Shown here: positions 11,024-39,848 of the stretch, piece after piece
How the letters are laid out: each line of letters begins with the position of its first letter
How positions within the stretch are numbered: the first letter of the stretch is position 1
From: Blepharisma stoltei ATCC 30299
Taxonomy: Eukaryota > Protista > Ciliophora
Direction: 5' to 3'
Length of the DNA stretch: 64,000 bases
Assembly: GCA_965603825.1 (NCBI GenBank)
Contig: CBFDEM010000051.1
Coordinates: 558,001-622,000, forward strand
The notes under the pieces: model-generated
The model's database searches: none
Seen by the model: only the letters and a program-made list of their open reading frames with translations
Told to the model about the DNA's origin: nothing
Position numbers and translations under genes: made by a program

Positions 11024-12467
11024 TTATTTAATAGGAGAGCTATACCGTAGGCTTGACCGGGACTTTGAAAATCTATACCGAACAGGAGTTAATTCCACTC
11101 TAACTCCACGGTCATTAGATTTCTCATCTTTTAAAGGATTTAGCTCAACTCAAAAATGTCGGTTTCTCCTGCTTATTGCTTCTTTTTTATAAATGTCAAT
11201 TTTTTCTTTTTCTTTTTTAACAATTTTCGTGTGGTTTTCAGGGCTTGAATATGGACTTTGGACAAAACTAGGTGATGGTGATCTTCTTACGAATGGAGAC
11301 TGAACTTTACTTGCATTTAAAACTACTTCTCCAGATAATTTTTGGAAAATTTTGGCTCGCGAAGAAGGCCTCATAGGTGATGGAGTAAGATTTTTCGCTC
11401 TGAAATCTTTTACTTTTTTGATAGAAAGACTTTTTCTGGTGATATCGTTAGGTTTCAGACCTTTATCAAATGGCTTATTTTCAATTAAAGGCAGCTTTTC
11501 TTTGAATTCTTCAGGATCAATTTGAAGGAAATCCTCAGGCAAAAATTTTAAAAATAAAATTTCAAATATGATATTATCAAAATCTTGGCTGATTAAGAGT
11601 TCATCATTTAAGGGCTGATTAATGAAATGCATTTCTCCATCTAATGAAGGCATGTCATTAATTTTCTTGTGTTCCTGGGATTCTGGAAAAAATTCGAAAG
11701 TTGATGTGCTTTCGCATGATTCCACATTTATATTTCCGATCTCAATTTTTTCTATAAATCCTTTAGCAATATTTTTAATTTTAAGGCTTTCTATGCATTC
11801 CATCATTTCTCTGCACAATTTGATAGTCGATTCTGTATTTTTTTCTAGTTTTAGCTTTACTCCGCCTAAGCATAAGCTGATAATTCCACACAATTCTTTT
11901 TGATTCTCTTCAGTAAGTTTTGTATTTAAATTTCCACACATGACTTCTGTGATTATATCTGAGGCTAATTCTATATAAGTGGCTGCTTTTTGAAAATGCT
12001 TTATAGATCACATGATAATAAAGGTCACTATGTGGCAGCATAATTGGATATCAGCCTCAAAAGTTTTGTTGTGCTTATTTGCTGTCAAAATTACTGATTG
12101 AATTTCATATATGAATCTTAAAGCCTGATGGTTTTTATGTGCCCAAACTATAGAAAAATTACTTATAAAAGAAAAATGCCATGGTTGAATAAAACAGAAG
12201 TTTTTCTTGTGATAGTGAATGCTTGGGAATTTTTGAGGCAAAAAAGTCTATTTTGAGAGCTTTATTAAGAATTTGGGAAGCTTCAAAGAGCTTATGATGC
12301 TGAATTAAAATTATCCCGAGAGATGTAGCTTCACTAATAAAACTTAAAAACCGAGAATAATGATCAGAATTGTCAATAACAATGAGCTTGCGAAGTTTTT
12401 CAAGTTTTTTATATTCAGTAGATAATTCTTGCAATGTTTCTTGTATTGAATAATATTTATCGTCCAT
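11024..12467 (-). CDS. Hypothetical protein with TPR-like N-terminus; atypical junction near 12150
   Basis: ORFs 12008..12241 and 11150..11941 join via TGA at 12008 and read through TGA 11150 to TAA 11024; joining to 12159..12467 needs a 3n+1 removal at 12162. Confidence 0.55.
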
Positions 12468-12676
12468 GCTAAGTGAGTTAAGTTAATTTTTATTTAAATC
12501 TTATGAAAATTAAAATCGAATTTTTATATGATAGTTGAAAAGCTACTTATCGGATTTGTTGTGCGAAATAGTGAGTGAAAATCCTGTCCTTTGCATGAGT
12601 GTAATTTACAATTAATAGCAAGTTGTTAAATAAGCAATTAAGTCTAAGTATTTATATAATAATTCTATTACATCTA

Positions 12677-15013
12677 TTATTCCCTGTATTGCACATATAA
12701 TTTTTGCCTCTTTATCTTAGATATCACATTTTCATCACTAATTTTACAAGCACTAAAAAATTTTCATAGCCATCTTATAGCTGCTTCCTCAGTTCCTCCA
12801 AAATCTGCTTGATAAGTTTGGAACAATTTCGGTAAAATTAGCTCTTCTACAGATAAGTTTAAACAAACTTCTCTATTGCAATACTCCTCAGTCTTTTTTT
12901 CCAATATATCATCAACTCCTTCATGAAAATCAATTATAGGCTGCATTGGATATGGTGGATCCTGACATACGATCAACACTCTTGGATCTTGATGATTTGG
13001 CAGCATATTTCTTGGATCTGAGTTATAAAAAAACCTCGTATAGCTGCCTGGTGGCTTTTTATTTCCTCTTAACACTCCATGCTTCAGCTCTTTTAAAGTG
13101 TAGTTTAAAAAATTGATACAATAATAAAAATTGTCAGCTGGATCTTTAAACCACCCTGCCTTTGTATCTCCCAGCTCAATCATTTGGTGCAGAGCCATGA
13201 TTTGATAAACTGCTAAAAAGAACTCAACTTTTTCATTTCTCGTTAAATTTCTAGTCTCTACTCTTTGCAGCTCTCCAACTGCTCTAATTAGTTCTCTATA
13301 TTCATTGCTGCTTCTTATAGTTTCCACATCATCTTTATACTGACTTATAATTTGATTAGCAATTTGCACCAAATCTCTTACAACAACATGAGGAACACGC
13401 ACATCTTTGCTTCACAAATAGATCATGTTGCGAGCTACATCAGTTCTGTCTTCTCTAAACTGATAGAATAAAGTTTGAGAGAAAAGGGACTGTCCATCAA
13501 TATTATGAATTAAGCCTTGCTCAAGCATTTCTTGCCCTGCATTTCTTGACTGGTCTAAGGTGTATTTATATTTGCTTTGCAAATATTCTAATAAGTCATT
13601 TCCTGTAAAGACCCTTTGGTAAGTTTTACCAAACCAGCCAATTTTTTTGTCTTGGAGGCTCATTTCTGAGCGAGCAAAGCTCGCTATATCACTAACTTGG
13701 ATTATATTTGGTTTTGGAGCATTGCCTGCTTTTTTACGATTTCGAGGATCATGATCAAAAAGAGGCATAATTGTGTCAGCACATGAAGTTTCTTCCACGA
13801 ATTTTGTGATGTGTTCTTTGACAATTGGCATATTAGCTAAGTCCCAAACTGTAGGTCGTCTATTTGGATCCTTATTCAGCATTTGAGATACAAGCAACTT
13901 TATATTAGTATCAACGTAATCTGGCAATGGCTGATACTCTTTGTTTAAAACTACATCAATCAAGCTCTGGACATCTTTTCCTTCAAATGGTCGTTTAAAT
14001 GTAGCCATTTCATATAGTACACATCCAAGCGACCAAATATCTGTCTTTTGTCCATATTTTTCCTGCCTCAGGATTTCTGGTGCCATACTATAAGGAGTCC
14101 CAGCCACACTTTGAGCCATTTCATAAGAGTTACTTAGGCTCTTCGCAATTCCTAAGTCTCCTACCTTAATAACATTCCCTTGCAAAAATAGATTTTCAGT
14201 TTTCAAGTCTCTATGAAGTACATGTTTGCTGTGCATAATCATCAAGGCAATAATAATTTGGGCAAACCACATGATTATTTGTTCATCACTCAGTCTCTCT
14301 CCTCTGTTTCTCAGTTCTTGCAATTTTTCGCTCAGACATCCTCCTGAGGCGAACTCCATGCAAATGTACAAAGTTTGCTCTTCAACAATTTGCTCGTGAA
14401 ACTGAATTATAGTAGGGCCTACTAGAACTCTCATAAGTGTCGCTTCATTTTCTGCGTTCCTTCGGTCTCTTTCATTAGATAAAAATTGCATATCGATTTT
14501 CTTTAAGGCTAGTAATTCCCCTGTGCTTTTTTTTCTTACTAAATCGACTGATGCAAAAGCCCCTCTTCCGAGAGTCCTAATTCTTTCATATGCTTTAAGC
14601 CCAGTTTCAACTGTAGGTGAGTTTTTCGGACGGATTTTTAATTGATTAACTACGGTTTTGACGGCTCCTGGCCTGATAGGCTTGATCAGGTAATCCAGGG
14701 CACCAAGATCCAAGCTTGCATACACTTTGTCCATTTCGCTATGTGCTGAAAGCATGACGACAGGGATATCTTTGAGGTCTGGTGTTTCCTTTAGCTTTCC
14801 CAGAAGCTCGAGACCGTCCATTCCTGGGAGCTCTAAGTCAAGAAGGACCAAGTCGTAGGTGGATCCTTTTTGTTTTAAAAGTTCTCAAGCCATATGCCCA
14901 TCTTCAGCTGTCTCTACTTCGTAATCAAGCAGAGAGAGTATATCAATCATTGCAAGACGCTGGAATGGCTCGTCTTCAACAACTAATATATGAATTAAAG
15001 CTTCATCAACCAT
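12677..15013 (-). CDS. Multidomain protein: response-regulator receiver + NEK-family kinase + DEP + DUF547-like
   Basis: Joined via TGA at 14885, 13412 and 12764. REC: VVEDE, LLDLELPGMDG, LIKP. Kinase: GRGAFA, HRDLK, DLG, GTPYSMAPE. DEP: FTGNDLLEYL..GLIH..FYQF. DUF547: HGVLRGN, DPR, YQADFG. Confidence 0.85.
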
Positions 15014-15074
15014 TTGACTAATAAATATATGATTATTAAATGGAAGTTCAGAATGAATTTTTGTGCTAATAACA

Positions 15075-15776
15075 TTAAGTTTTGCTGGAAACAACAGACT
15101 TTAATTCTTGCAAGTATTTTTCTTGAAGCTTTGTTTTCATTTCAAGCCTCGAAAGAAGCTCCTTTTCACGTTCTTTTAAAGCTTTTATTTCAGTCCAATT
15201 TTGAATTGTTCTGGTTTTTTCGTCAGAAAGTTTCTCTTTAATGCGAGATGGGCCTGGCGAGCTTTCTACGCTTGACTTATTATATGTGCTTGATAACTCT
15301 TTAAAGTTATTTTGGCACATAGGGCCAAGCGAGTTTCTCTTTTGTTTTGTCAGAAAATCCTTAAGCTCTCTAACCGTCCTTTTCCTTTCTTCTAATACTA
15401 TCCCTTTATGTTTCATGATTATTTCTTTATTTTCTAGTCTTTTTTGATTGTTCCTTTGCCTCAATGTCTCCAATTGCTGCATTTTCATCATCTCATATTG
15501 CTTTTTGTCAGCTTTTTCTTTGCGTTTTCTATTTTTTAGCTCATTCACACTATCAATATGTTGCTTTGCTAAATCAATTTTTTTCTGGGTCTTTTGTTCT
15601 TCTTTTTCTAGCTGCTTTATGCGATTTTGCATAGAAATTAGATGCTCAGTTACTTTCTTCCGTTCGACAAAGGCATTAAATAAATCAAGCCCTTCTGAAT
15701 TTGTTTGTCTAAAGAAAGAGACTTTTGAATCTCTAGGAGATAACGAATAAGGAGAGCGAAGAGAAGTTTTTGACAT
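15075..15776 (-). CDS. Coiled-coil hypothetical protein
   Basis: 233-aa K/E/Q-rich ORF, ATG to TAA. Confidence 0.7.
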   Translation of the reverse strand: MSKTSLRSPYSLSPRDSKVSFFRQTNSEGLDLFNAFVERKKVTEHLISMQNRIKQLEKEEQKTQKKIDLAKQHIDSVNELKNRKRKEKADKKQYEMMKMQQLETLRQRNNQKRLENKEIIMKHKGIVLEERKRTVRELKDFLTKQKRNSLGPMCQNNFKELSSTYNKSSVESSPGPSRIKEKLSDEKTRTIQNWTEIKALKEREKELLSRLEMKTKLQEKYLQELKSVVSSKT

Positions 15777-16014
15777 TTTAGATTTAATTATTGATTAATT
15801 TAATTAATGCAATTTCATATCTAATTTAATTGGTCTTAATGGAACTGAGTTTCTTATCTTTGAAAAATGAATTTTTTTATGTTCACCTTTATCATAATTA
15901 TCACTTAGACTTTTTTCCAAAACAATTGATTAATTTTTATTATTAATGCTGAATTTATATGGTTTAAATAAAATTTTATAAATAGCTAGAAGTTAATCTA
16001 AACGGAATAATGAA

Positions 16015-16833
16015 TTAGATTACATGTCTTTTCCTCAGAAATGAATTGCTTCTCGCAAATTCTTTAGTCGGCCTAATTTTAGGCAAGTATTCAATTTGGT
16101 TTACACTTTTTTCTCGGACTTTTACTGCAGGAGACATAGTTTCGTCTATTGGCTTCATAGCGGCAGAATTGCAAATTTCTTTAAAGTCTTGGAAATCTTG
16201 AAAATCTCTTCTATGAGTAGAAGGCTCAGAAAAGTCTGCATCCATGAAAACTCCAAGCCTCAAACTGCTTTTTGATCTTTTCGGTGCTAAATATTCTTTT
16301 TCTTTATAGCTTGACCCATACGTCGTTAGATCGTTGAATTTTAATTCATCACTATGCAGATTGTGAGGATAAGGACTAAAGGATCGTTCTTTAAGAGGAC
16401 TATAGTTTTTATAGGAAACTTTATAGGTAGATCTTGTATCAAGTTTTGCAATATTCGGATTATATTTTTTTTTAGTAAATTTTATAGGACTAATTTGATG
16501 TTCTTTGTATTCCAATCTATAGCTTGAATTGGAATTAAATGGATATTTAGATAGCGAATAACAAGAATCAAATGATCGGTTTACCTTGTAACTGGGAATC
16601 TTAATATATTGGTATTCTGAATTATAAGAAGATTGCAATTTTATAGGAATTTGACGAAATATTTTTCTGCTAGGGCACTTGTGCTTACCACAAGTGCATT
16701 TATGGCAGAGACAAAGCCCAACGTTATGGTCATTTTCTGTAACAATTCCTAAGTCTGGATCATCAAGCAAACAGCCTTGGTCTATATTTATATGGGAGTT
16801 AGAACTAACTGGCATTTGCAAATCCATATTCAT
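16015..16833 (-). CDS. SAXO/STOP-like (FAM154) axonemal microtubule-stabilising protein
   Basis: N-terminal CLCHKCTCGKHKC motif and repeated S/T-T-Y-x-x-x-Y Mn-like motifs (SSYNSEY, SSYRLEY, STYKVSY, TTYGSSY). Confidence 0.65.
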   Translation of the reverse strand: MNMDLQMPVSSNSHINIDQGCLLDDPDLGIVTENDHNVGLCLCHKCTCGKHKCPSRKIFRQIPIKLQSSYNSEYQYIKIPSYKVNRSFDSCYSLSKYPFNSNSSYRLEYKEHQISPIKFTKKKYNPNIAKLDTRSTYKVSYKNYSPLKERSFSPYPHNLHSDELKFNDLTTYGSSYKEKEYLAPKRSKSSLRLGVFMDADFSEPSTHRRDFQDFQDFKEICNSAAMKPIDETMSPAVKVREKSVNQIEYLPKIRPTKEFARSNSFLRKRHVI

Positions 16834-16849
16834 TTAATTAAAATTAGGG

Positions 16850-18412
16850 TTAAATTATTGCAGTTTGGTCTGTAGTTTTTGAAAACTCTTTATATTTTTT
16901 CTTGTGTAATGCAATTATAGCATTATTTACGTCAATACCAATAATTTCTTTGTTTATATTTAACGTTTCATCAATATTTTTCTTTACTTGAGACAGCTTT
17001 TTTTCAGTATCTTTTATTCTTTTAATAAAATTATCTTTTTCCTGTTGCTTGTTCAAAATTTTTTTCATAGTTGTGTTTAAATTGTATTGGTTTTTTGTGA
17101 AGTTTTCATAGTGATCAGACCTGCGGAGGCTGTTTCATTCTGACAGAAGTTGGGCTTGTTGTGTGTATCATTCTTTGGTTTGCTCGCGAATTTTTTCTCT
17201 ATTTAATTCTTTTACGTCAAATTCTCTGTTTCTCAAGGTTTGCCTTTCTTCTTCTTTCCTCAATTCTTCCATTACTTTTTTCTTCCTTCTTTGGCTAACA
17301 TCACTTAATTTCTCAGCAATTCCTTTAAGATAGTCCTCTCTTTTTTTCTGCTTATTTCTTACTTTTGAGGCTTCTAAAGACTGATTAAGTGTATTTATTT
17401 TTTCTATTGTTTTTTGCTCTTCATAAATTTCGAGTTTGCTTTTGTTTTCCTTTACTTTGTAAGTAAAAGCATTCTTTGAGTTTACTTTTTCTAGCTGAAA
17501 TTTTTTTGCTCTCTTGATCGATTTTTCCATTTTTTGTTGCAGCTTTTCAAGCCTAAAATCAACTTCAACGTCGACTGATAAACCTCAATAGAAAAATTAC
17601 TCATTCATTCTTCTTGATGATGCTCTAGCTGTCAGCGAAGATTTTGATCTCTCATCACTAGCTTCATTAATAACTTCTTCCAACATTAAAGCTTTGGTTT
17701 CATTTTCTTGTATTTCCTATTTCTTTCTTACTACATATTTTCTTTTCAATTTCTCTTGCCTTTTCATATTATTTTCTTGGATTTTTTGCTTTCTTTCAGC
17801 CTCTTTTAATGCTTTATCTTCTTCTAGCTTTTTAAGCTTCATTTCTTGCCTGATTTCTTTGCTTATTATTTCTTTTTCTTTGTTTACTCGAAGGTATTTT
17901 TGGTTATTTTGAACTCTTAGAAATCTGTCTAATTTTTGCTGTTGCAGCAAAACTTGACGCTGGGTAGTAGTTAAAGGGCTAATTGGGTAACGGGGAGTAA
18001 CATCTGGCTCTTTATGAATAACACTAAGACTACGCTTAATTCTTAATGGAGAAGGGGAATTCGTGCTTACTCTTGAATCGTCTGGGGAGTTAGTTGCACT
18101 ATCAAATTTGTGAGCAAACAGTCCTTTTGAAAATAAGGTATTCGATAAGATTTCAATTTTAGCTTGACGGCGAGCTTCATAATGGCTATAACGGAGCATT
18201 TGAACCTCCATTGTTGAGTTTTTATCAGAAAATTCCTCAATTGGTTTAGGTTGTAACTCATTCGGGGAAAGACCAAGTTCGTTTAATGTTGGAACCAGAA
18301 GTGGATGAATGTAATTGACTTTCTTCATAAAAGAGTGTATTAATTTAAGCTGATGCTTATCAGACGTGGATTTAGGAGCGGCACTAGTGTTGCTTAAAGC
18401 TCGAGTTTCCAT
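16850..18412 (-). CDS. Coiled-coil hypothetical protein (two introns, two TGA-Trp)
   Basis: One reading frame runs from 18412 to 16850. It is interrupted by a 15-nt intron (17717-17731), an atypical intron starting at 17600, and TGA at 17168 and 17135. Confidence 0.7.
17717..17731 (-). other. 15-nt spliceosomal intron
   Basis: GTAAGAAAGAAATAG; A at position 10; removes in-frame TAG and restores the ORF. Confidence 0.8.
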
Positions 18413-19070
18413 TATAAAATATAATGGAATATCAATAAATTTTGATATGCCATTAATTTGCTCGATGATGCTATAATCTTGTGAAGTTAGTATAAATTAG
18501 ACTAATAAGATTATTACTATCTTTTATATATAAATTTTACAAATTTGACTGAAATTGAAAGTATAATTGATTTATAATATATTGCCCATTTAGCTGGATC
18601 AACAAATTTCGTTTTCATCTGCCCTTTTAGCTTTGTTTATATCATCAATCAAACTATACACATTTTCATTTCAGTTTTAGCTGCGCTTTTATATCTTCAA
18701 ATAAATGCCTTATATTTTTTATGCAAGCAATCTTCCTCGTTATCTGAGCTAAGATTGCATCTCTAGGTATTCATGAATCATCTTTATTTGGCGGTTAGCT
18801 TGCTCTTCGGCGAATGGGATATCCTCGCAGCTGGATTTATAAGTGCTTAGCTCGGTTTTTGCAGTCTCCCTGCATAAGAAAAATAATTTTTGAACTTGGA
18901 ATTCTTAGTTATCTAAGTAAATATTCAAATTTCGTGATTGCTATTAAAAATTCCCAAAAAATAAACATTATATTATAATGTAATTCCATTTATAAAATTG
19001 ATGCTATGAATAATTATTATTTATATAATTTTCCTTACATGTCCCATTTTCAATTCAAATTCTAATATAA

Positions 19071-21302
19071 ATGGCTTCCAAAAAAGTCGAGAGCGTAAAA
19101 GTAGCAGTCCGATGTCGTCCAATGAGCGAAAAAGAGATTGTTGATGGCAGAGCATGCATAGTCCAAGTTGATGCAAAAAGAGGCGAGTTAATTGTCGCCA
19201 ATCCTAAGCCAGATACAAGTGAGCCTCCTCGCCAATTCACATATGACAATACATACGGGCAGGATTCAGCTCAAGAACAAATCTATTGTGATACTGCCTA
19301 TCCAATTGTGCAAAGTGTGCTAGAAGGCTATAACGGCACAATTTTTGCTTATGGACAAACCGGAACAGGCAAAACCTTCACAATGGAAGGTAAAGAGGAA
19401 CCTCAGGAAAACCGTGGTATTATCCCACGTGCCTTCGAACAAATTTTTTATGGTGTCGATCAGCATCCTCAAACTCAGTTTTTAATTCGTGCATCTTTCT
19501 TAGAAATTTATAATGAAGATGTCCATGACTTATTATCAAAATCATCCAAAAATAAGCTTGACATTAAAGAAAGCCCAGACAGCGGATTTTATGTAAAAGA
19601 TTTAACTACATGTGTTGTCAAAGGAATTGAAGATATGAAAGCTGTGATGGACTTGGGCAAAGGAAACAGGCATGTTGGCGAAACCTTAATGAATAGAGAT
19701 TCATCAAGGTCTCATAGCATTTTCACTATCACAATAGAAAGCAGTGAATCAGATAATACAGGGATTAACCATTATAAGGTCGGAAAACTAAATTTAGTCG
19801 ATTTGGCAGGAAGTGAAAGACAAAGCAAAACTGGATCTACAGGAGATAGGCTAAAGGAAGCCACCAATATCAATAAGTCCTTACTAACTTTAGGAAACGT
19901 TATTTCTGCTCTTGTAGATGGAGCTTCAACTCATATCCCATACAGAGATTCTAAGCTCACAAAACTTCTTCAAGACTCATTAGGTGGCAACACAAAAACT
20001 GTAATGATTGCTAATATTGGCCCTGCTGACTGAAATTATGATGAAACCTTATCCACCCTTCGTTACGCAAATAGAGCCAAAAATATCCAAAATAAGCCAA
20101 AAATTAATGAAGACCCAAAAGACGCTATGCTTAGAGAGCTTCAAGATGAAATTGCAAGACTAAGAGCCCAGTTAGGCGACGGAACCTTAACAGCAGAACA
20201 GCTGTCTATGGGAGGACAAATTTTGCAAGCAGGAGACCCTCAGGTAGTTGAAGTCGAAAAAATAATTCGTGTTGAAGACAAGGCAAAAATTAAAGCAATT
20301 GAGGACAAAATCGTAAGGGAAAAAGAAGAAATTTTGTTGCAAACTGAAGAAAAGAAAAAAGAAATTGAGGCGCAAAAGGATATAGCTGAAAGTGAGAAGA
20401 AAAAACTTATAGAGGAACTCCAAAAAGAAGCTGAAGAACAGCAGATAGCCCAAGAAAAGCAATCAAAATTGTTAAAGAAGCTGAAACAAATGGAGCAAAA
20501 AGTTATCAGTGGGGCGCAGATCATGGAGCAAGCTGTTAGGCAAGAGCAGGAACTGCAGAAAGCAAGAATGGAGCTCGAAATGAGAGAGCAGCAAGAACAA
20601 CAGCTGAATCAAGATATAAATGACAGGGAAACTGAAAATACAGAAATGCTCAATAACTTCAATTCTAAGCATGAGGAAATTGCTGATAAGGATAAAAAAC
20701 TCAAAAAATTGTACTCCAAATTCCAAAGTGCCCAGGATGAGATGAAAGACATCCAAGCAGAATTTGCACAGGAGCGCCAAGATTTAATCGATACAATAAA
20801 TGTGCTTAAGCAGCAAGTTTGCTTAAAAAACCTGGTTTTAACAAGCTTTATCCCTCAAGACCAACTGTCTTTAATAGAAAGCTTTGCACAGTGGAACGAA
20901 GAAGGTGAAGAATGGATCTTGCCAAGGCTAGATTTGGCAGGAAATAACTTACGTGGCCCGGGTGCTGGAAAAATCAAGAAAAAATCCAAGAAAAATGAAA
21001 AAGAATACGACGGGGCCGTGTCACAAAGAGTGCAAACAGTTGTGCAAAGCATACTGCAAGAATACAGCGAAGATCCTATGGTGATGCCTATAGAAGCCAA
21101 CCCTACAGTCTATTTTATGTACACTGATGAAGGGGCTATGAGAGCTGACAGTGAGCAGTCAGAGTCGAAACCTAAAAGACTTAAAAGCGCAAAAAGGCCT
21201 GCAAGTGGCAAAAAATCAAGCGCGCCAAAAGAAAACCCTCAGCCGAAGCCTGAAGAAGCTTACCCTCAAGCAAGAGGCTTAGTTAGTGCTAAAAGACGAT
21301 AA
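19071..21302 (+). CDS. KIF3: Kinesin-2 motor subunit (KIF3/FLA10-like, IFT motor)
   Basis: [19 protein letters not shown]; TGA 20031-20033 gives [22 protein letters not shown]; C-terminal YPQARGLV. Confidence 0.93.
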
Positions 21303-21303
21303 G

Positions 21304-22248
21304 TTACTTAATCCCTTCATTATTCTTAAACACCTCTTGCCTATGGGTATAGAGCATTTCAGTCTGCTCTTTCTTGGCTCTCCAGTAATCCTCTGCATAC
21401 TGCTTTGCGCCTTCTTCCAATACAGCTTCTTCTATATCTTCTCTTGCAATAATGATCCCTTTTTTTCTATTCTCCTTATCTATTTGTATCACTTTTCTTT
21501 TAAGCATTAAATGCTGTTGCTGTCTGCCTTTCGCTGTCATAGTGCTGGTTTCAGCTTGTAGATCTGATAAATCACAGCCTCCATGGAAAAAGTCATTTCT
21601 TAACTTAGCAGCCAACATAGCTGGGAATTTTCCTTTCATCATGATTTTATATATATCTTCTGGGCTTTTTTCTTCTAAAGTGATCCTCACTTGCACTCTT
21701 GCACTTTCGCCACGTGCTGCAAGCCCTTTTGCATGAAATTTTACAAAACGCCCTGGTGTATTCCTGCCTACTTCAATAGTTTTGATGAATAATCTGTCGA
21801 CAGACAAATTTTTGTGAGTAGTCGCATTGTGGACGGCTGCATTTAATAGTCGTAATAGATAATCAGCTGCCTTCTTGTAAGAAAGAGCTATGAGCTTGTA
21901 TTCAGCGTCTGCAACGTGGATTCGTTTGAGGATGTGAAGCAGTGGGACGATTTTTTTCATGCTGGAGGGGATTTTCTTTCGAAGTGCGACTGCAACTCTT
22001 GGGACAACTGGAGGCTTCTCGACGACCACTTTGTGAAAAGGTGGAGGAGGAGGGACGAAAGAAGACTCAGGAGGAGTAAATGTAAGAGAAATAGTTGGAG
22101 GTGGGGTAAAAGTTTTTTGGGATGGATGGATGATAAGACCACGATCTGTGTAATGTTGAATTGGCTTTGGGTGGTCTTTTTTAAAGATGAGATGGACAGA
22201 GGAAAGGTTGAACCAAGATCGATACCCTCTTGCTATTTTTGAGAGCAT
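21304..22248 (-). CDS. MRPL22: Mitochondrial ribosomal protein uL22
   Basis: L22 core SMKK..AVHNA..LFIKTIEVGR...HAKG; presequence-like N-terminus. Confidence 0.75.
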   Translation of the reverse strand: MLSKIARGYRSWFNLSSVHLIFKKDHPKPIQHYTDRGLIIHPSQKTFTPPPTISLTFTPPESSFVPPPPPFHKVVVEKPPVVPRVAVALRKKIPSSMKKIVPLLHILKRIHVADAEYKLIALSYKKAADYLLRLLNAAVHNATTHKNLSVDRLFIKTIEVGRNTPGRFVKFHAKGLAARGESARVQVRITLEEKSPEDIYKIMMKGKFPAMLAAKLRNDFFHGGCDLSDLQAETSTMTAKGRQQQHLMLKRKVIQIDKENRKKGIIIAREDIEEAVLEEGAKQYAEDYWRAKKEQTEMLYTHRQEVFKNNEGIK

Positions 22249-22498
22249 TTTTATGATGAGAAAGTTAGATTAGATTTCGAATTATGAGGCTTAATAATAT
22301 AATAGAGTCGAGGTATTCTAATTTTCTTCAAATGAGTCGATGTATTTATGAAGTGAAGTAAAAGAATTAAATGCTCATTATGTAATTAATATTGTGTATA
22401 ATGCAATAAAATCAATATTTACGGCTTTTTCAATATTTTAAATTGATCAAATTTATTTTTTTGATAGTGTTATATTGTTATATTTAATTTATTTTAAA

Positions 22499-24520
22499 TT
22501 AGATATGAGGATCTTCATAAAGCTTATCAATGATAGCTTTATTCTTTTTATGGACTACACTTCTCTTTAATTTCATAGTTGGAGTCAAATCTCCGCCAGC
22601 AACTGAAAATTCTTGCGGAAGGAAAGCCCATTTTTTGATTTGATGTACTCTTGAAACAGCATGTTTATTATAATGATCAATTGCATGCTGAATATATTTA
22701 TGCACTAATGGACACTCCATAGCTGTTTTATTTTCAGATGCCGGACTCCCGAATGATTTCAAAATTGAGATGACCTCTGGAGTTAAATTTTCTGACAGAC
22801 TTCCATCAGAGTTTGGAACTCTCTTTAAAGTCAAAAGTAAAGCAAGATATTTCTTAGCATCACCAACACAAAGTACTGAATTTGCAATTTTACAAAGTGA
22901 TTTGATTTCATCTTCAATCAGAACTGGAGGAATGTTTTCACCTCCCGCCGTAATAATCAGCTCCTTGATTCTTCCAGTTATCGTAAAAAATCCATCCCTG
23001 TCCATAAACCCTTCATCCCCAGAGTGCAAAAATCCTTGAGAATCAATCGTTTCTCTCGTGCTTTTTTCATTTTTCAAGTACCCCAAAAATCTATTTCTTC
23101 CTTTATACACAATTTCTCCAATTTCCCCACATGGTAGTTTCTCCCCTTTGGAATTCACAATTTTTGCTTCACATCCTCTTAATGGTTTTCCAACGCTTCA
23201 AACTGAGCACTCATATATTGTATTCATCATCAATGGAGAAGCAGCTTCAGACATCCCAAAAAGATTTGTTAAAGGTATTCCAACTGATAAAAAGAACTCA
23301 AGGGTTACTTTACCAAGTGGAGCTGCCCCAAATAAAAACGTTTTGCATCTCTCAAAACCTAATGCTTCTTTGAGAGGCTGGAAAAATAAAGAATTTGCAA
23401 TATGGTAATTATGAGGAAGAGGCTTTTTCTCAAACAACAAAAGCATTGATTTTAGTCCTATTTCTCTTGCCCAGGCAATCATTTTCTTTTGGCTAGGTGT
23501 GCTTGCAGCAATCATACGCTTGATTGACTCTTCAATTTTTTCATATATTCTTGGGACACCCCAAAAGAAGGTGGGTCTGTATTCTTTTAGAGCTGGGCCA
23601 ATACCAGTTTGAAGAGCTGATTCATCTGGAAAATTCACACAGCCTTTAGCTAGAATAACTGTAAAAAAGTCAAAACACTGAGCAGCCACATGACTGTAGG
23701 GAAGATATGAGAAAAATTGTTCATCAGTTCCACTGGTTCTGTACTTTTCTAGAGTTCTTTTGGCAGCGAAAATATAATTGTCGTGGCTAAGAAGAACTCC
23801 TTTAGGAGGTCCAGTTGTGCCTGAAGTATAAACAATAGTGACCGCTTGAGTTGCTCTTATTGAATTTATGCGATTTTCTATTTCTTGAGGATCAACATCT
23901 GAGCCTAAGTTCATGAACTCCTCCCATGAAAATACAGGTCTTTCTCCTTTGTATTCTTTTAAATCAGTCTTTGGGGCAAAAACCACAATTCCTTTTACTT
24001 TAGGGAGCTTATCTCATATATGCAGATATTTCTTTAAATGAGACTCGTTTTCTACAACCACAAGCTCAGCTTCGCTATGCTCCGCAATATAAAGGCAATT
24101 TTCACTTCCACTTGTAGTGTAAACTCCAACTGGAACACAATTTGCAAGGATGGCACCAGAAAAAGCAATTATCCATTCTGGTGAATTAAATCCAATTATG
24201 TTAATTGCTTGTCTCTGTGCAATTCCTAGACAAATCAGTGATACAGAAAATTGGAGAGATTGAGAATAAAATTCTTGGTAATTATAAGTTACGGTGGAGC
24301 TGTTACGCTTAGCTCTTAAGAAAGTTTTAAACGGAGATGCTATCACTGCTTCTTGAATAATTTGGGCATAAGTGAGAGGTTCCTCATAGGGCATATTTGA
24401 TGACATTATGATTGGAAGTTCATCATTGATCCCTGTGACCCAATATAAATATTTACCGTCGTCTTTTGGAAGGATTGATCTAGTAGCATTGTCTGAAAAC
24501 CAATAATGCTTGGACTCCAT
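22499..24520 (-). CDS. ACSBG: Long-chain acyl-CoA synthetase, bubblegum (ACSBG) family
   Basis: Joined through TGA at 24014 and 23198; IIGFNSPEW, YTSGTTGPPKG, GRIKELIITAGGENIPP, LTPTMKLKR. Confidence 0.9.
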
Positions 24521-24795
24521 TTATATAAGTTATATGATAAAAAATTTCAGTTATAAATTTTAGGTTTATATTAATTTGATTTCAGATTAATTATATTTGT
24601 TGTTTAAGTCATATATGCTTATTTAATTTTATTTCCATGAAAATGTTTTTTGCTAATTTTCTAGGCTCATTTATATAATTTCTTTTCTTTTTGAGTGACA
24701 GAGTCAAAAATGAATTCAAATGCAAAATCCTATATTTCATGTGGAACAAATTCAGAGCTAAAAGAAAAAAGAGCATTTGTTTGTATTTATTTTGA

Positions 24796-24836
24796 GATCT
24801 TCATAAACTTATCAATGGTAGCTTTTATTTTTATGG
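24796..24836 (-). pseudogene. Degenerate ~40-bp copy of the 3' end of the neighbouring ACSBG CDS
   Basis: gatcttcataaacttatcaatggtagcttttatttttatgg vs 22510-22553 gatcttcataaagcttatcaatgatagctttattctttttatgg; same orientation, with indels. Confidence 0.6.
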
Positions 24837-25259
24837 CATTAGCTTCTCCATTAATTTGGCATTTGACACTTAAAATTCTTAAGTGGGGGAAGTATTGATT
24901 ATTTAAACAACGAGCTTATTATAATAGTTATTTGCGAGCTGAATTTATTATGCTCTAATTTGCATTATATAGCTGCTTATTTTCAGAAGTTTCTATCCCC
25001 TGACTTTTAAAAATCAAGATCCCTAATAATTAACTATAATTTAAAACTGATATAAAATTAACTTTACTAAAATAAAGGTTTTCATTGGTTTAACTTATTT
25101 TTCTTGAATTTTTATACTCTCTGACTGAAGCTTTTCTAAAAATATGATCTCTTTTAAGAATAATAGGCTTAATTTTGAATATTTTTTAATGTTTAAATAA
25201 TTATCAATATTAATATCTGCATAAATTATAAACAAAAGCAATGTTTATTTCTATAATTA

Positions 25260-26315
25260 ATGGAAGCAAAAAGACAAGAAATGAAGTTAGCACTTATTGG
25301 CATGGGATTTGAGGAAAGTAAGGTTGATAATGTGTTAATGCTAACAGATGACTTTGAAGACGCAGTCACTTATTTGACTGAAGGCATCAATGCCAATCAA
25401 ATAGCTCTTTCTATAAAAAACAACATTATTTCTCAGCTCAAAGAAATGGGATTCTCTTCAGACATTGCAAACATGGCTGCAGAACGATACAAAATAATTA
25501 GAGAAGCAGCAGAGTTTGCTACCAACGCTTCCATGTGAGATCTTCAAGGCGATAGGCCTCAATACAACCTTCGTCCAATCATACCTCCTCCTCTTCCCGC
25601 TCCGCTTCCCAACACTAAGCAGAGAATTGTGGACCAACTCAGAGAGTTCGGTTTTGACAATGCCAAAGCTCAAGAAATCTCGAATAAATTCAACAATTAT
25701 GAGGAAGCAATAGAATATGCTACTAGCACAATACACTTAAACCAAGCACCTCAGCCCCCACAAATAGAGCCAGAACCGAATCCACAAGAATACGAAGACC
25801 CTGAAAACGAGCTTGATATAAGAGACATTAGTATTAACCTTTACCGCTCAGGGATTCCTGCTGAGGAAGCATTTGCAAGGATATTGCAGTGGCTTGGGAA
25901 TGAATATGTGGAAGATCATCAAATTGTGGAAGTTCCTCATCCATTCCCATCACGAACAATTGCTCGAAGAGACTTTTATGGTCAAAATCCCCAAGCTCAA
26001 TCTATATATATATCTCCAGAGTCAATCAATATTGAAGGAAGAAAAATTCGAGGAACGTCAAGAGAAGAAATTATCGACATTCTTGGAGAGCTGTACCCTC
26101 CCAAAGGAGCTTCAGAAGAAGCTAAGAGCAAAATTTCAGAAATTTTGTACAGAAATTCGATGAGTCAAAAGGAATGCGTAATTTGTCAAGAAGATTTTAA
26201 GCACAATGATCGGCTATTTCAATTGCCCTGCTCTCACATTTACCATAAGAAATGCATAACTAAGTGGCTCGCAATGAGCGAAGCTTGTCCAGTTGATAAC
26301 CTTAAAATTGAGTAA
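25260..26315 (+). CDS. Triple-UBA + RING-H2 ubiquitin ligase
   Basis: UBA motifs LIGMGF, LKEMGF and LREFGF; joined via TGA 25536; C-terminal CVICQEDF..LPCSHIYHKKCITKWL..CPV. Confidence 0.85.
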
Positions 26316-26318
26316 TAA

Positions 26319-27782
26319 ATGAAATTATTAAGAAATCTTCGAAAAATCTCAACTTTTCAAATCCCTGAAAGAGGTCATTATAAACTCTTAGACAATAAAG
26401 ATATTGATTTCTTTTCAAGCATCCTTCCTAGCCACTCAATCCTAACCAAAGATCTTGATGCCTATAATACAGATTGGCTGCGTTTTCATAAAGGCAATTC
26501 CAGCATTGTCCTAAAGCCAAAAACTACAGAGGAAGTAAAATCTATTTTGGAATACTGCAATAAAGAAAAAATCGCGATTGTTCCACAAGGAGGAAATACT
26601 GGCCAAGTGATCGGAAGTGTTCCTATATATGATGAAGTAATTCTTTCATTGCAAAACATGAACCGAATCTTGAAAATCGATTCTTCACAAGGAGTGGTTT
26701 GGACTGAAGCGGGGGTTATTTTGGAATATTTGAATAGCTTCTGTGAGGAGCATGGATGGATTGTGCCATTAGATTTAGCATCGAAAGGGTCTTGCTTTAT
26801 TGGAGGAAATGTAGCAACTTGTGCTGGTGGGGTAAGGTATATTAGATATGGGTCATTGCATGGGAATGTGCTTGGTCTGGAAGCTGTTTTGCCGACAGGT
26901 GAAATTTTATCTGATTTAAAGGGGTTGCGGAAAGACAATACAGGCTATGACTATAAGCAATTATTCATTGGCTCAGAAGGCACTTTAGGAGTCATCACAA
27001 AAATTGCTCTGCTATTAGCTCCTAAGCCTATATCCCAGCAGGTAGCAATGATTTCCTGCAAAAGCTACGAAAATGTCTTGCAGCTCTTAAAAGATGCTAA
27101 GCAAGGGATCGGTGAAATTCTCTCTGCTTTTGAGATGATGGACAGCTACATTTATTCTCTGCTTTTAAAGCACACTCCACGTACAAGAAACCCATTTACA
27201 GCAGACTCAGAATTTTATGTTTTAATTGAAACCTCTGGGAGCAATAAAGACCATGATATTGAAAAGTTGCAGGCTTATTTGGAAAATGGGCTAAAGAATA
27301 ATGTGATTACTGATGCAGTTCTAGCCCTAGATCAGGAGCAGGCTAACAATTTCTGGAGAATTAGAGAAGGTACAGCAACTGCAACAAAAAGTGAGGGTTA
27401 TGTCTTTAAATATGATTTAAGTCTATCAATTGCAAAAATGTATGATTTGGTAAGAAAAACAAGGGAAAGAGTAGGCAGTTTAGGATATACAGTAGGCTAT
27501 GGGCACGTTGGGGATGGAAACTTACATTTGGTAGTGTCAACCAATGAGAAAGAAAAAGCTCATAGGATTTTGGAACCTTGGATATATGAGCAGATACAAG
27601 AATTAAAAGGAAGTGTAAGTGCAGAGCATGGAATTGGGTTGTTAAAAGCTTCGAAGTTAAAATACACAAAAAGTAAAGTGATGATTGAAAACATGGTAAA
27701 TTTTATATAGAAACTCATGAAAAACATTTTCGATCCTAATGGAATCATGAATCCATATAAAGTCCTTAATAATAGTAATTAA
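26319..27782 (+). CDS. D2HGDH: D-2-hydroxyglutarate dehydrogenase, mitochondrial
   Basis: PQGGNTG, LRKDNTGYD, GSEGTLG, GHVGDGNLH, SAEHGIG; after the 15-nt intron it ends FDPNGIMNPYKVL. Confidence 0.93.
27696..27710 (+). other. 15-nt spliceosomal intron
   Basis: GTAAATTTTATATAG; removal restores the conserved D2HGDH C-terminus. Confidence 0.92.
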
Positions 27783-27787
27783 TATAA

Positions 27788-28174
27788 ATGACAAAAAAGT
27801 CAAATTGGATGAAACCAGAACGAGGGGTAATGTTCCTTAAAACTTTAGCATTAAGCTATTCAAGCTTCCTGCTGTTTTCCTTCACTAGCACATGTCAAAC
27901 GGCCTCATGACTTTATTACTTGTGAATGATGTTTTTAGTGGAAATTTCGCTAGGACTTGTTTCAGAATTAATTACTCGCACACAGAAATTTATCAAAAAT
28001 TTTATTTTAATTATTCAAGTTTTGGAGTTTATTTGGCAGCTGATAGGGATTTATTTGACAATTAGTTCAACTTGTCAAGATGAAATGCAAAATGGAATTC
28101 GAATTTTGCTCTGTTGTTTTGGGCTTTCAACACTTATTTTATTCATAGGGATGGTAAGAGCTTTATTTAATTAA
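27788..28174 (+). CDS. Small multi-pass membrane protein
   Basis: ATG 27788 is in frame with ORF 27926..28174 via TGA at 27908 and 27923; about four hydrophobic segments. Confidence 0.6.
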
Positions 28175-28185
28175 TATAAGTTAAT

Positions 28186-28851
28186 TTAAGGACCACAGTT
28201 TTGAACTATACGGCTTGGGTTGAAGATGTCAAAACAAAAATAATGCATCATCACAAAATAATATATGACTGAAAACAGCATAAGATTTAACGCAGCATGC
28301 ATCATAATGATCCATCTAGATTTAACCATGCTGTGGTAGCCTGATAAAAAGTCATTGTTGTAAACCATGAACCGAATTTTGCTATCATATCTATGTTTCC
28401 TAAGTTTTAAATTGTGTAGGACATCTCTATGCAAATTGAAGGAATACAGCTGATTTTCTTCGACTTCATAAAAGAGATATGATGATGAACTCTGGTTGCA
28501 TAATAAAGGGTTATAAATCATTTTCGCTAATGGGTCTTCGATTTTGCGATGATTTGAATTAAAAATGCATAAGGCAGATTCGTGAAAAATTATTGCTAAA
28601 ATATTCCCAAACAGTGACAGCAAATTTATATATGGGATGACATATAATACAATGAGAAAAATCGGGTATTTGCATTGCATAGCATATCAAAATTTATATA
28701 GGACACTATTTGGAGCCTTCGCTAAATATTTCTCGTTTTCTCTGTTAACTGGGTCGTTGTATTGCTGGATAACAATATTATACTGTGATATAGGGTCATT
28801 ATCGCCTTTAATCTGCACTTTCAATTGAGAAAATCTCATTGTCCTTATCAT
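28186..28851 (-). CDS. Hypothetical membrane protein
   Basis: ATG 28851 is in frame with ORF 28186..28680 via TGA at 28687; hydrophobic segments. Confidence 0.6.
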
Positions 28852-28881
28852 TTTTAATCTATTATAAAGAATTATTAAGCC

Positions 28882-29517
28882 CTAGCAGCATCCTGACTTT
28901 TTCTGGTATTTCACAACACTTTTGGGGACGATTTTTAGAGGTGCAGCGTTATCTTTTTTGAATTCATCAGTTTGTTTCATATACAGCACCTCAGCAACTT
29001 TAAGAAAAACCCTAAATAGCTCACTTACCTCGTCAACATTTTGCGCAGTTTTAGCTGAAGCTTCAGTTCCTCCATCCAATCTGTTTTCTCTGACAAATTT
29101 GTCCAATTCTTCTGGAGAGACCTCTCTTTCCTCATCAGCTAAATCAATCATATTACCTACACAGTAAATTGTTATGTCAGGGTCAGAGTTTTGCTTGATT
29201 TCTCTCAACCACTCATATAAGTTAATAAAACTTTCTTTATGAGTCAAATCATACATTAGAACGACACCATTTGCATTTCGGTAAAAACTCCGCGTTATTG
29301 ACCTAAAAGATTCTTGTCCTGCAGTATCCCAAATTTGTAATTTTATTTTTTTATCGCCAAGCCTTATTATTTTAGCGCTGAATTCCACACCAATAGTGAC
29401 GCTGTGATCTTTAGTAAAGTTCCCTTCAGTAAATTGCAATAAAAAGCAAGACTTTCCCACTCCGGAATCTCCAATAATTAAAATCTTAAACAAAGCATCA
29501 GGGACTTCTAAATCCAT
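28882..29517 (-). CDS. Rab GTPase (Rab2/4/14-like)
   Basis: GDSGVGKS, TIGVEF, WDTAGQESFRSITRSFYR, ASAK, terminal CC; contains an intron-like insertion VSELFR. Confidence 0.92.
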   Translation of the reverse strand: MDLEVPDALFKILIIGDSGVGKSCFLLQFTEGNFTKDHSVTIGVEFSAKIIRLGDKKIKLQIWDTAGQESFRSITRSFYRNANGVVLMYDLTHKESFINLYEWLREIKQNSDPDITIYCVGNMIDLADEEREVSPEELDKFVRENRLDGGTEASAKTAQNVDEVSELFRVFLKVAEVLYMKQTDEFKKDNAAPLKIVPKSVVKYQKKSGCC

Positions 29518-39419: not shown

Positions 39420-39848
39420 ATGGAAGATATTTTTGGTGTCAACCTAATTTCGCAAGGAGGCGTAGTGAGGACAAGCACACTACACAACTATAGAATTGTT
39501 TTAGTACTTGCATCTGCATCATGGTGTCCTACATGCCATCAGTTTCTACCAAGACTTATAGATTTCTATCGAGCAGTAAATTCAAGTGGGAAAATTATGG
39601 AAATTGTCTTTGTCAGCAGAGACAAAAAAGTGGATGAATTCAATAATATAGTTCGCAATGTTCCTTGGGTTGCAATGAACTTTGATCAAAGAAGAGCAGA
39701 AGCAGTTTTCCAGAGATTTGGGATAAGCGGAATTCCTAAGCTTATTTTACTCAATCAGAACGGAGCTCCTGTCAGAATGGAATGCAGAGAAGACATCTTA
39801 GCCAATGGGCCTGGCTGTATTGAAATCTGGAGGAATCTCTTAGATTAA
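39420..39848 (+). CDS. Nucleoredoxin/tryparedoxin-like thioredoxin
   Basis: SASWCPTC active site; EIVFVSRD, PWVAM, GIPKL. Confidence 0.85.
   Translation: MEDIFGVNLISQGGVVRTSTLHNYRIVLVLASASWCPTCHQFLPRLIDFYRAVNSSGKIMEIVFVSRDKKVDEFNNIVRNVPWVAMNFDQRRAEAVFQRFGISGIPKLILLNQNGAPVRMECREDILANGPGCIEIWRNLLD

Follow-up and report, generated by a model that had tools for sequence, protein, structure and literature searches.

Evidence for tiny introns with non-AG acceptors in three genes of the ciliate Blepharisma stoltei and in their homologs

Three short elements on the minus strand of a 64,000-nucleotide (nt) stretch of the Blepharisma stoltei ATCC 30299 genome (contig CBFDEM010000051.1, positions 558,001 to 622,000; hereafter the window) interrupt a gene for a protein with no Pfam domain (site 1), a member of a K/E-rich protein family (site 2) and a Rab2-like GTPase (site 3). 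We consider all three to be tiny introns of the ordinary kind, processed by the major spliceosome but ending in a non-AG acceptor, which is chosen by its distance from the branch point and represents an old, inherited end, and give this reading a probability of about 0.78. The site 1 element is removed from RNA as a 19 nt GT-TG intron, while cuts one base past an AG (GT-AGG) have been published for paralogs of the site 3 gene. Furthermore, the same odd ends occupy equivalent positions in gene copies that diverged long ago and in further ciliates, which makes them old features rather than errors. An earlier note had placed GTAA-N5-CTAT elements at 12162, 17600 and 29028, where all three are indeed located, and removal up to the nearest AG (15, 17 and 17 nt, respectively) leaves each frame shifted by +1 and running into a stop, as it had claimed. 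The genes and introns concerned are:

12163 to 12467, minus strand: exon 1 of the site 1 gene (474 amino acid protein, no Pfam domain), from translation and profile search
12144 to 12162, minus strand: site 1, 19 nt GT-TG intron, phase 2, from RNA contigs, public model P0121, paralog L034 and ortholog L045
11024 to 12143, minus strand: exon 2 of the site 1 gene, with two UGA tryptophan codons, from homology
17732 to 18412, minus strand: exon 1 of the site 2 gene (K/E-rich protein family, no Pfam domain), from homology and profile search
17717 to 17731, minus strand: standard 15 nt GT-AG intron of the site 2 gene, removed in X8 and X10 RNA contigs
17601 to 17716, minus strand: exon 2 of the site 2 gene, from public model comparison
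17583 to 17600, minus strand: site 2, predicted 18 nt GT-AGG intron, phase 2, from a frame test, the conserved downstream exon and homolog L253
16850 to 17582, minus strand: coding region 3′ of site 2, matching the C-terminal half of the full-length proteins of the family (blastp)
17348 to 17362, minus strand: standard 15 nt GT-AG intron without a stop, 3′ of site 2 in the same gene and missing from an X9 contig, with a stop-containing 15-mer at the matching L253 position
29029 to 29517, minus strand: exon 1 of the Rab2-like gene (PF00071, E-value 1.5e-49)
29011 to 29028, minus strand: site 3, putative 18 nt GT-AGG intron of the Rab2-like GTPase, with a homologous intron in seven paralogs and eight environmental genes
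28882 to 29010, minus strand: exon 2 of the Rab2-like gene, encoding the last helix, the hypervariable tail and the terminal CC, translated only after an 18 nt cut or upon retention

The macronuclear genome of B. stoltei reads UGA as tryptophan, and its introns are mostly 15 to 16 nt long (Singh et al. 2023 PNAS, PMC9942806). Open frames in the window grow longer once TGA is treated as sense, and two proteins encoded in the window match B. stoltei records at 100%. Of the standard introns, described earlier as eight elements of 15 nt with A at position 10, nine frame-breaking 15 nt GTA..AG candidates with A at position 10 are present in the window, one of which (17717 to 17731) is spliced in RNA contigs. 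A further frame-joining 15 nt GT-AG candidate (39736 to 39750, minus strand) departs from this pattern, with G at position 10 and A at position 9.

Read evidence consists of contigs over sites 1 and 2, with site 3 lying outside the read coverage. Runs X8, X9 and X10 were labelled RNA by guess, but have zero depth in intergenic stretches and lack the standard 15 nt introns. A contig of the DNA run X1, which is possibly the source of the assembly itself, is identical to the window over 11950 to 17900 (0 differences, 0 gaps), a range that includes both sites. A second allele, visible as clustered substitutions at 13799 to 14393, occurs in the RNA runs but not in the DNA run, which would fit the presence of a second strain among the RNA samples. 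Homology searches were run one exon at a time, and joined frames were translated solely to count codons.

The 19 nt GT-TG intron at site 1

In the RNA contigs of X8, X9 and X10, exactly 19 nt are missing at 12143 (left-aligned), corresponding to a GT-TG cut, while the DNA run X1 retains them. As the element is present in the DNA contig and gone from the RNA contigs only, it is not an internally eliminated sequence. The TG acceptor is thus used in RNA in three runs of one study, and public model P0121 takes the same 19 nt junction. The internal AG at positions 14 to 15 is out of frame, and the 15 nt form ending there was not seen in the RNA contigs, from which rare forms drop out. Candidate branch point adenines are located at position 12 (-8 from the TG end) and position 14 (-6).

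The TG end is shared by relatives of this gene. A paralog with 45% identity (L034) contains a 19 nt intron whose last ten bases are the same as those of site 1 and are followed by A, so that the TG boundary cannot slide, and an ortholog from another organism (L045) also carries a 19 nt GT-TG element. In a distant paralog on contig C55 (exon 2 E-values 2e-18 to 9e-29), the intron interrupts the same codon and keeps the core, but ends in a canonical AG at 17. All four family members share the TCTATAG core. A word search with exon 1 of the site 1 gene gave no matches. Elsewhere in the genome, a fourth exact copy of the site 1 15-mer (L248; C53:430976, minus strand) is followed by G, and removal of either 16 or 19 nt restores the frame there; a 16 nt GT-GG cut would place the A at -5, beyond the usual geometry.

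AGG acceptors at sites 2 and 3 and in their homologs

At site 2, retention of the element leads to an in-frame TAA and a cut at the AG at positions 16 to 17 to a frameshift, while removal of either 15 or 18 nt restores the frame. A branch-type A is present at position 12 (-7 from the productive end). The region downstream is homologous to the full-length family member P0127 (blastp E-value 5e-11), and six homologous gene calls stop near the site 2 position. The homolog L253, which is 43% identical to the site 2 gene, contains at the corresponding place a canonical-looking 15-mer with A at position 10, of which the AG is again +1 out of frame and is followed by G; a 16 nt GT-AGG cut in L253 opens a frame matching the downstream exon of the window (E-value 1e-28). 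Stop readthrough fails to account for this +1 frame in L253, and as such an AGG acceptor is the simplest common reading of site 2 and L253. No stop-bearing intron was found at this position in the B. stoltei paralogs of the site 2 gene. The two standard introns of this gene (17348 to 17362 and 17717 to 17731) appear to be removed in part of the RNA runs and kept in the rest, and the gene may be poorly spliced throughout.

At site 3, the 18 nt cut is in frame, the 17 nt AG cut truncates the protein and retention adds six residues; a branch-type A again occupies position 12 (-7). As the 18 nt element lacks a stop and the unspliced frame stays open, it is the homologs, and not the window by itself, that make a non-AG cut necessary here. 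Seven B. stoltei paralogs share the intron position, and five of these are of the AG+G type, requiring removal of 16, 16, 19, 18 and 18 nt, while the remaining two (L007 and L008) have canonical 15-mers in phase 2. Full-length public models exist for three of the AG+G paralogs (P0002, P0030 and P0065), and two of the paralog introns are listed in Table S9 of PMC9942806 with splice fractions of 0.54 and 0.648. In P0065 the Asp preceding Val is retained, so that the shift lies at the 3′ end rather than at a 5′ GG. The paralog on contig C24 carries an 18-mer identical to site 3 and its gene model takes the 18 nt cut, while the dominant outcome at identical introns differs between P0001 (17 nt cut) and P0030.

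Conservation of this intron extends to the environmental homologs, five of which (L037, L039, L040, L042 and L127) are of the AG+G type with lengths of 17 to 19 nt and incur a stop or frameshift if the intron is retained. Two others (L043 and L126) are canonical in phase 0 and one (L128) is canonical in phase 2, while the Rab gene of Stentor coeruleus lacks an intron at this position. L037 and L127 end their Rab frames with TGA, and therefore do not use the Blepharisma code. Four-fold degenerate sites of the window Rab and its homologs are 15 to 41% identical, where saturation corresponds to 27%; for the C24 paralog, with its identical 18-mer, the value is 26%. The three intron states (canonical phase 0, AG+G and canonical phase 2) lie one base apart, which suggests that the intron may have slid by one nucleotide via the AG+G state. 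The Rab tree, obtained by a quick search limited to exon 1 and leaving 43 of 87 inner branches open, does not fix the order of these states. A metagenome scan with Rab exon 1 returned mainly generic Rabs. The metagenome contig L048 encodes a distant Rab in which a stop immediately follows the same motif, and may thus carry another phase 2 intron at the Rab intron position.

Acceptor geometry and competing explanations

In all thirteen AGG elements, which are 16 to 19 nt long, a TA is present whose A falls at exactly -7 relative to the productive end, or -6 relative to the AG, and each element amounts to a perfect canonical tiny intron with one G added. The site 1 family has adenines at -8 and -6 from the TG. 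The geometry of heterotrich U2 tiny introns, with an A 10 to 12 nt from the donor and 6 to 7 nt from the 3′ end, is thus matched by the sequences, site 1 having A12 at -8 and A14 at -6. Splicing by the minor (U12) spliceosome was rejected, as the donors are of the GTAA type and no minor small nuclear RNAs are found in the genome according to the supplementary information (SI) of PMC9942806. Of the earlier note's proposals, a non-AG 3′ site for the full-length protein is borne out at site 1, by the GT-TG cut in the RNA contigs, and in the Rab paralogs, by splice fractions and gene models, although not as a necessity at site 3 from the window alone. The non-canonical junctions it proposed to look for in RNA appear at 12144 to 12162 in three runs, while 17583 to 17600 shows retention only. 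Its branch-point-shifted acceptor is compatible with A12, as judged from sequence, but not as the property of a single class with C at position 10 (C10) and CTAT.

We suggest that the 3′ cut would fall some 5 to 6 nt past the branch A, with the terminal dinucleotide checked loosely such that GG or TG may be accepted. At sites 2 and 3, a cut at the AG (frameshift and premature stop) would compete with a one-base slip to AG-G, giving the full-length protein, while at site 1 the AG may be too near the branch region, so that the cut would be made at the first dinucleotide ending in G within a suitable distance, the TG at 19. Such ends would have been passed on through gene duplication and speciation, with some lineages repairing them to canonical ones or losing the intron. 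The public models P0001 (28882 to 29517) and P0123 (16850 to 18412), belonging to two of the three window genes, are both truncated at the non-canonical intron and probably miss the full-length, productive isoform.

Several observations weigh against this reading. The window Rab model P0001, with 166 amino acids, takes the truncating 17 nt AG cut, while P0123 ends at the site 2 TAA with no intron called there. No splicing at 17600 is seen in three RNA contigs (depth 5 to 8x), all of which retain or run into the element. The RNA contigs come from one study and drop rare isoforms, and the RNA runs and public gene models possibly represent the same data and would then not be independent. In addition, the branch points were assigned from the sequence alone, and the distance rule, the 18 nt products of sites 2 and 3 and the removal of the AG products by nonsense-mediated mRNA decay (NMD) are likewise deduced.

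That the elements form a distinct class with its own mechanism, marked by C10/CTAT as the earlier note had held, is very improbable. The motif is common to the three window sites and the site 1 family, and four exact genomic copies of the site 1 15-mer all lie at frame breaks. However, three matches in the window compare with 1.87 expected, 28 of 100 shuffles reaching three, and the 17 nt form of GTAA-N5-CTAT has 89 matches genome-wide against 122 for a reversed control, most of the 89 breaking no frame. By a length-based frame test, four of the 89 need a canonical 17 nt cut (one borderline) and one needs 15 or 18 nt, while a codon usage test left 74 unclassified. The motif is also carried by in-frame canonical 17 nt introns (L208, L211 and L222, the first two sharing their first 15 bases with site 1), indicating that C10/CTAT is a mark of longer introns, which have their branch A at position 12, and not of an out-of-frame AG. 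Among the AGG elements, CTAT occurs at positions 10 to 13 in four of thirteen and is lacking in nine. The single class was therefore rejected in favour of two kinds of site, TG (site 1) and AGG (sites 2 and 3), and C10 is most simply read as a by-product of the 17 to 19 nt length, which must lack A at positions 10 and 11. A CTAT-type element at C54:313577 (L206, minus strand), with an in-frame stop, has a 15 nt AG cut in frame even though position 10 is C, and has either an unusual branch position or an 18 nt non-AG cut.

Very improbable, in our estimation, is that part of the site 1 element is also read as protein, through a +1 frameshift at AAG-TAA when the RNA is left unspliced or through a 16 nt cut, keeping Ser-Ile-Val-Trp or Trp. 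The 3′ half of the element does encode S-I-V-W in the exon 2 frame in three homologs, with synonymous differences only. This is opposed by the 19 nt cut in the RNA contigs and gene model, and by the C55 paralog, which keeps the core yet has a stop in the S-I-V-W frame together with its canonical 17 nt end. The +1 frameshift motif of Euplotes, the known ciliate case, is AAA-TAR rather than AAG-TAA, which also counts against it. Assembly errors or decayed genes could be invoked since each extra base lies within a short homopolymer and the window Rab and site 2 models are truncated. The DNA contig is, however, identical over sites 1 and 2, the same extra base recurs in independent assemblies of other organisms, and the downstream exons are intact and conserved, making this explanation exceedingly improbable.

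Two further proposals are tentative. In the first, which would add to the preferred reading of inherited non-AG introns rather than replace it, the non-AG ends may be selected as expression dampers or switches, in which a productive non-AG product is set against an AG or retained product removed by NMD; NMD of the short forms has already been proposed for non-canonical Blepharisma introns (Singh et al. 2023, PMC9942806 SI). A single G-to-A change would suffice to turn each AGG end into an in-frame canonical AAG, but AGG has been kept in 11 Rab genes whose synonymous distances are near saturation. The identity of the 18-mer in the window Rab and C24 paralog at 26% four-fold identity, the TCTATAG core in all four site 1 family members, the different dominant outcomes at identical introns (P0001 and P0030) and the presence of Upf1 in Blepharisma point in the same direction. 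On the other hand, the intron has been repaired or lost in L007, L008, L043, L126, L128 and Stentor coeruleus, indicating that it is dispensable in those lineages, and if AAG is a poor acceptor, as it may be, AGG could persist without any regulation. A regulatory role is unproven.

The other proposal, for which we hold out similarly limited expectation, is that loss of Prp18 in heterotrichs permits the 5 nt branch-to-acceptor distance and the GG and TG acceptors. PF02840 has no match over the cut-off in the B. stoltei genome, where Slu7 is detected with an E-value of 8e-44; its best weak match falls in the tail of a protein resembling Sec16/Sec31. Table 1 of PMC9505925 also gives Prp18 as not found for Stentor, and the pattern of the yeast prp18 deletion agrees (PMC10711555). 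The same search, however, missed PF08799, expected in Prp4, which shows limited sensitivity; the Stentor table missed Slu7 as well, which Blepharisma has; and second-step factors are reported to be conserved in all ciliates examined (PMC13685798). The missed Prp4 motif and the latter report make the Prp18 link a lead only. The Slu7 homolog of B. stoltei is clear and located at C41:564068-564697, although no Slu7 was reported for Stentor (PMC9505925). The combined proposition, that heterotrichs keep non-AG tiny introns under selection over hundreds of millions of years as splice-slippage dampers, with Prp18-type checking lost and the state representing a 1 nt sliding intermediate, is doubtful.

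Comparison with known systems

Non-canonical introns are known in this species: 62 of 4,670 B. stoltei introns are non-canonical, with GC-AG, GT-GG and GG-AG being named (Singh et al. 2023, PMC9942806). Sites 2 and 3, at 18 nt each, share with the GT-GG (GT-AGG) and GG-AG (GGT-AG) introns described there a 5′ GT, a 3′ AGG, a length of at least 16 nt and an internal GT-AG form that leads to a premature stop, for which NMD was proposed. In sequence terms, these two genes thus fit the type of Singh et al. 2023, including the NMD idea, while site 1, with its TG end, is not a member. Table S9 of that study lists 15 and 16 nt cases only and the SI text does not include GT-TG; conservation across paralogs or genera, a fixed -7 branch geometry and canonical sister introns shifted by one base are likewise absent from it. 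It leaves the choice between GG-AG and GT-GG open, for which P0065 and the GAT-preceded homologs found here point to the 3′ end. The RNA-supported 19 nt GT-TG intron, the deep conservation in three gene families and the fixed branch geometry are new, and no report of heterotrich conservation of such non-AG ends was found in the literature searched, which excluded most subscription journals.

Vertebrate U2-type GT-TG and GT-GG introns (GNAS, TSPYL2 and BANP; Parada et al. 2014, PMC4176328) are similarly processed by the major spliceosome with TG or GG acceptors, some of which are conserved far. Those introns are long, however, and TG is mostly an alternative to AG, whereas site 1 measures 19 nt, and no form other than TG was seen there or would be productive. 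Yeast without Prp18 comes to use BG acceptors located 1 nt beyond the usual AG, as well as acceptors close to the branch point (Roy et al. 2023, PMC10711555), indicating that the major spliceosome is capable of such +1 and branch-proximal cuts. The slip to BG one base past the AG and the acceptors near the branch point are shared with our elements, but there they are low-level mutant errors, while in wild-type Blepharisma, where absence of Prp18 is not established, they yield the productive form. Introns of 16 to 19 nt with conserved non-AG acceptors thus represent a minimal natural system for 3′ splice-site choice, in which every base can be varied. The Rab clade also resembles one-nucleotide intron sliding, in that homologous introns in phase 0 and phase 2 lie one base apart, but differs in that a non-canonical state bridging both positions is present in living genes. 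With three intron states at one position, the clade makes 1 nt intron sliding testable on living genes.

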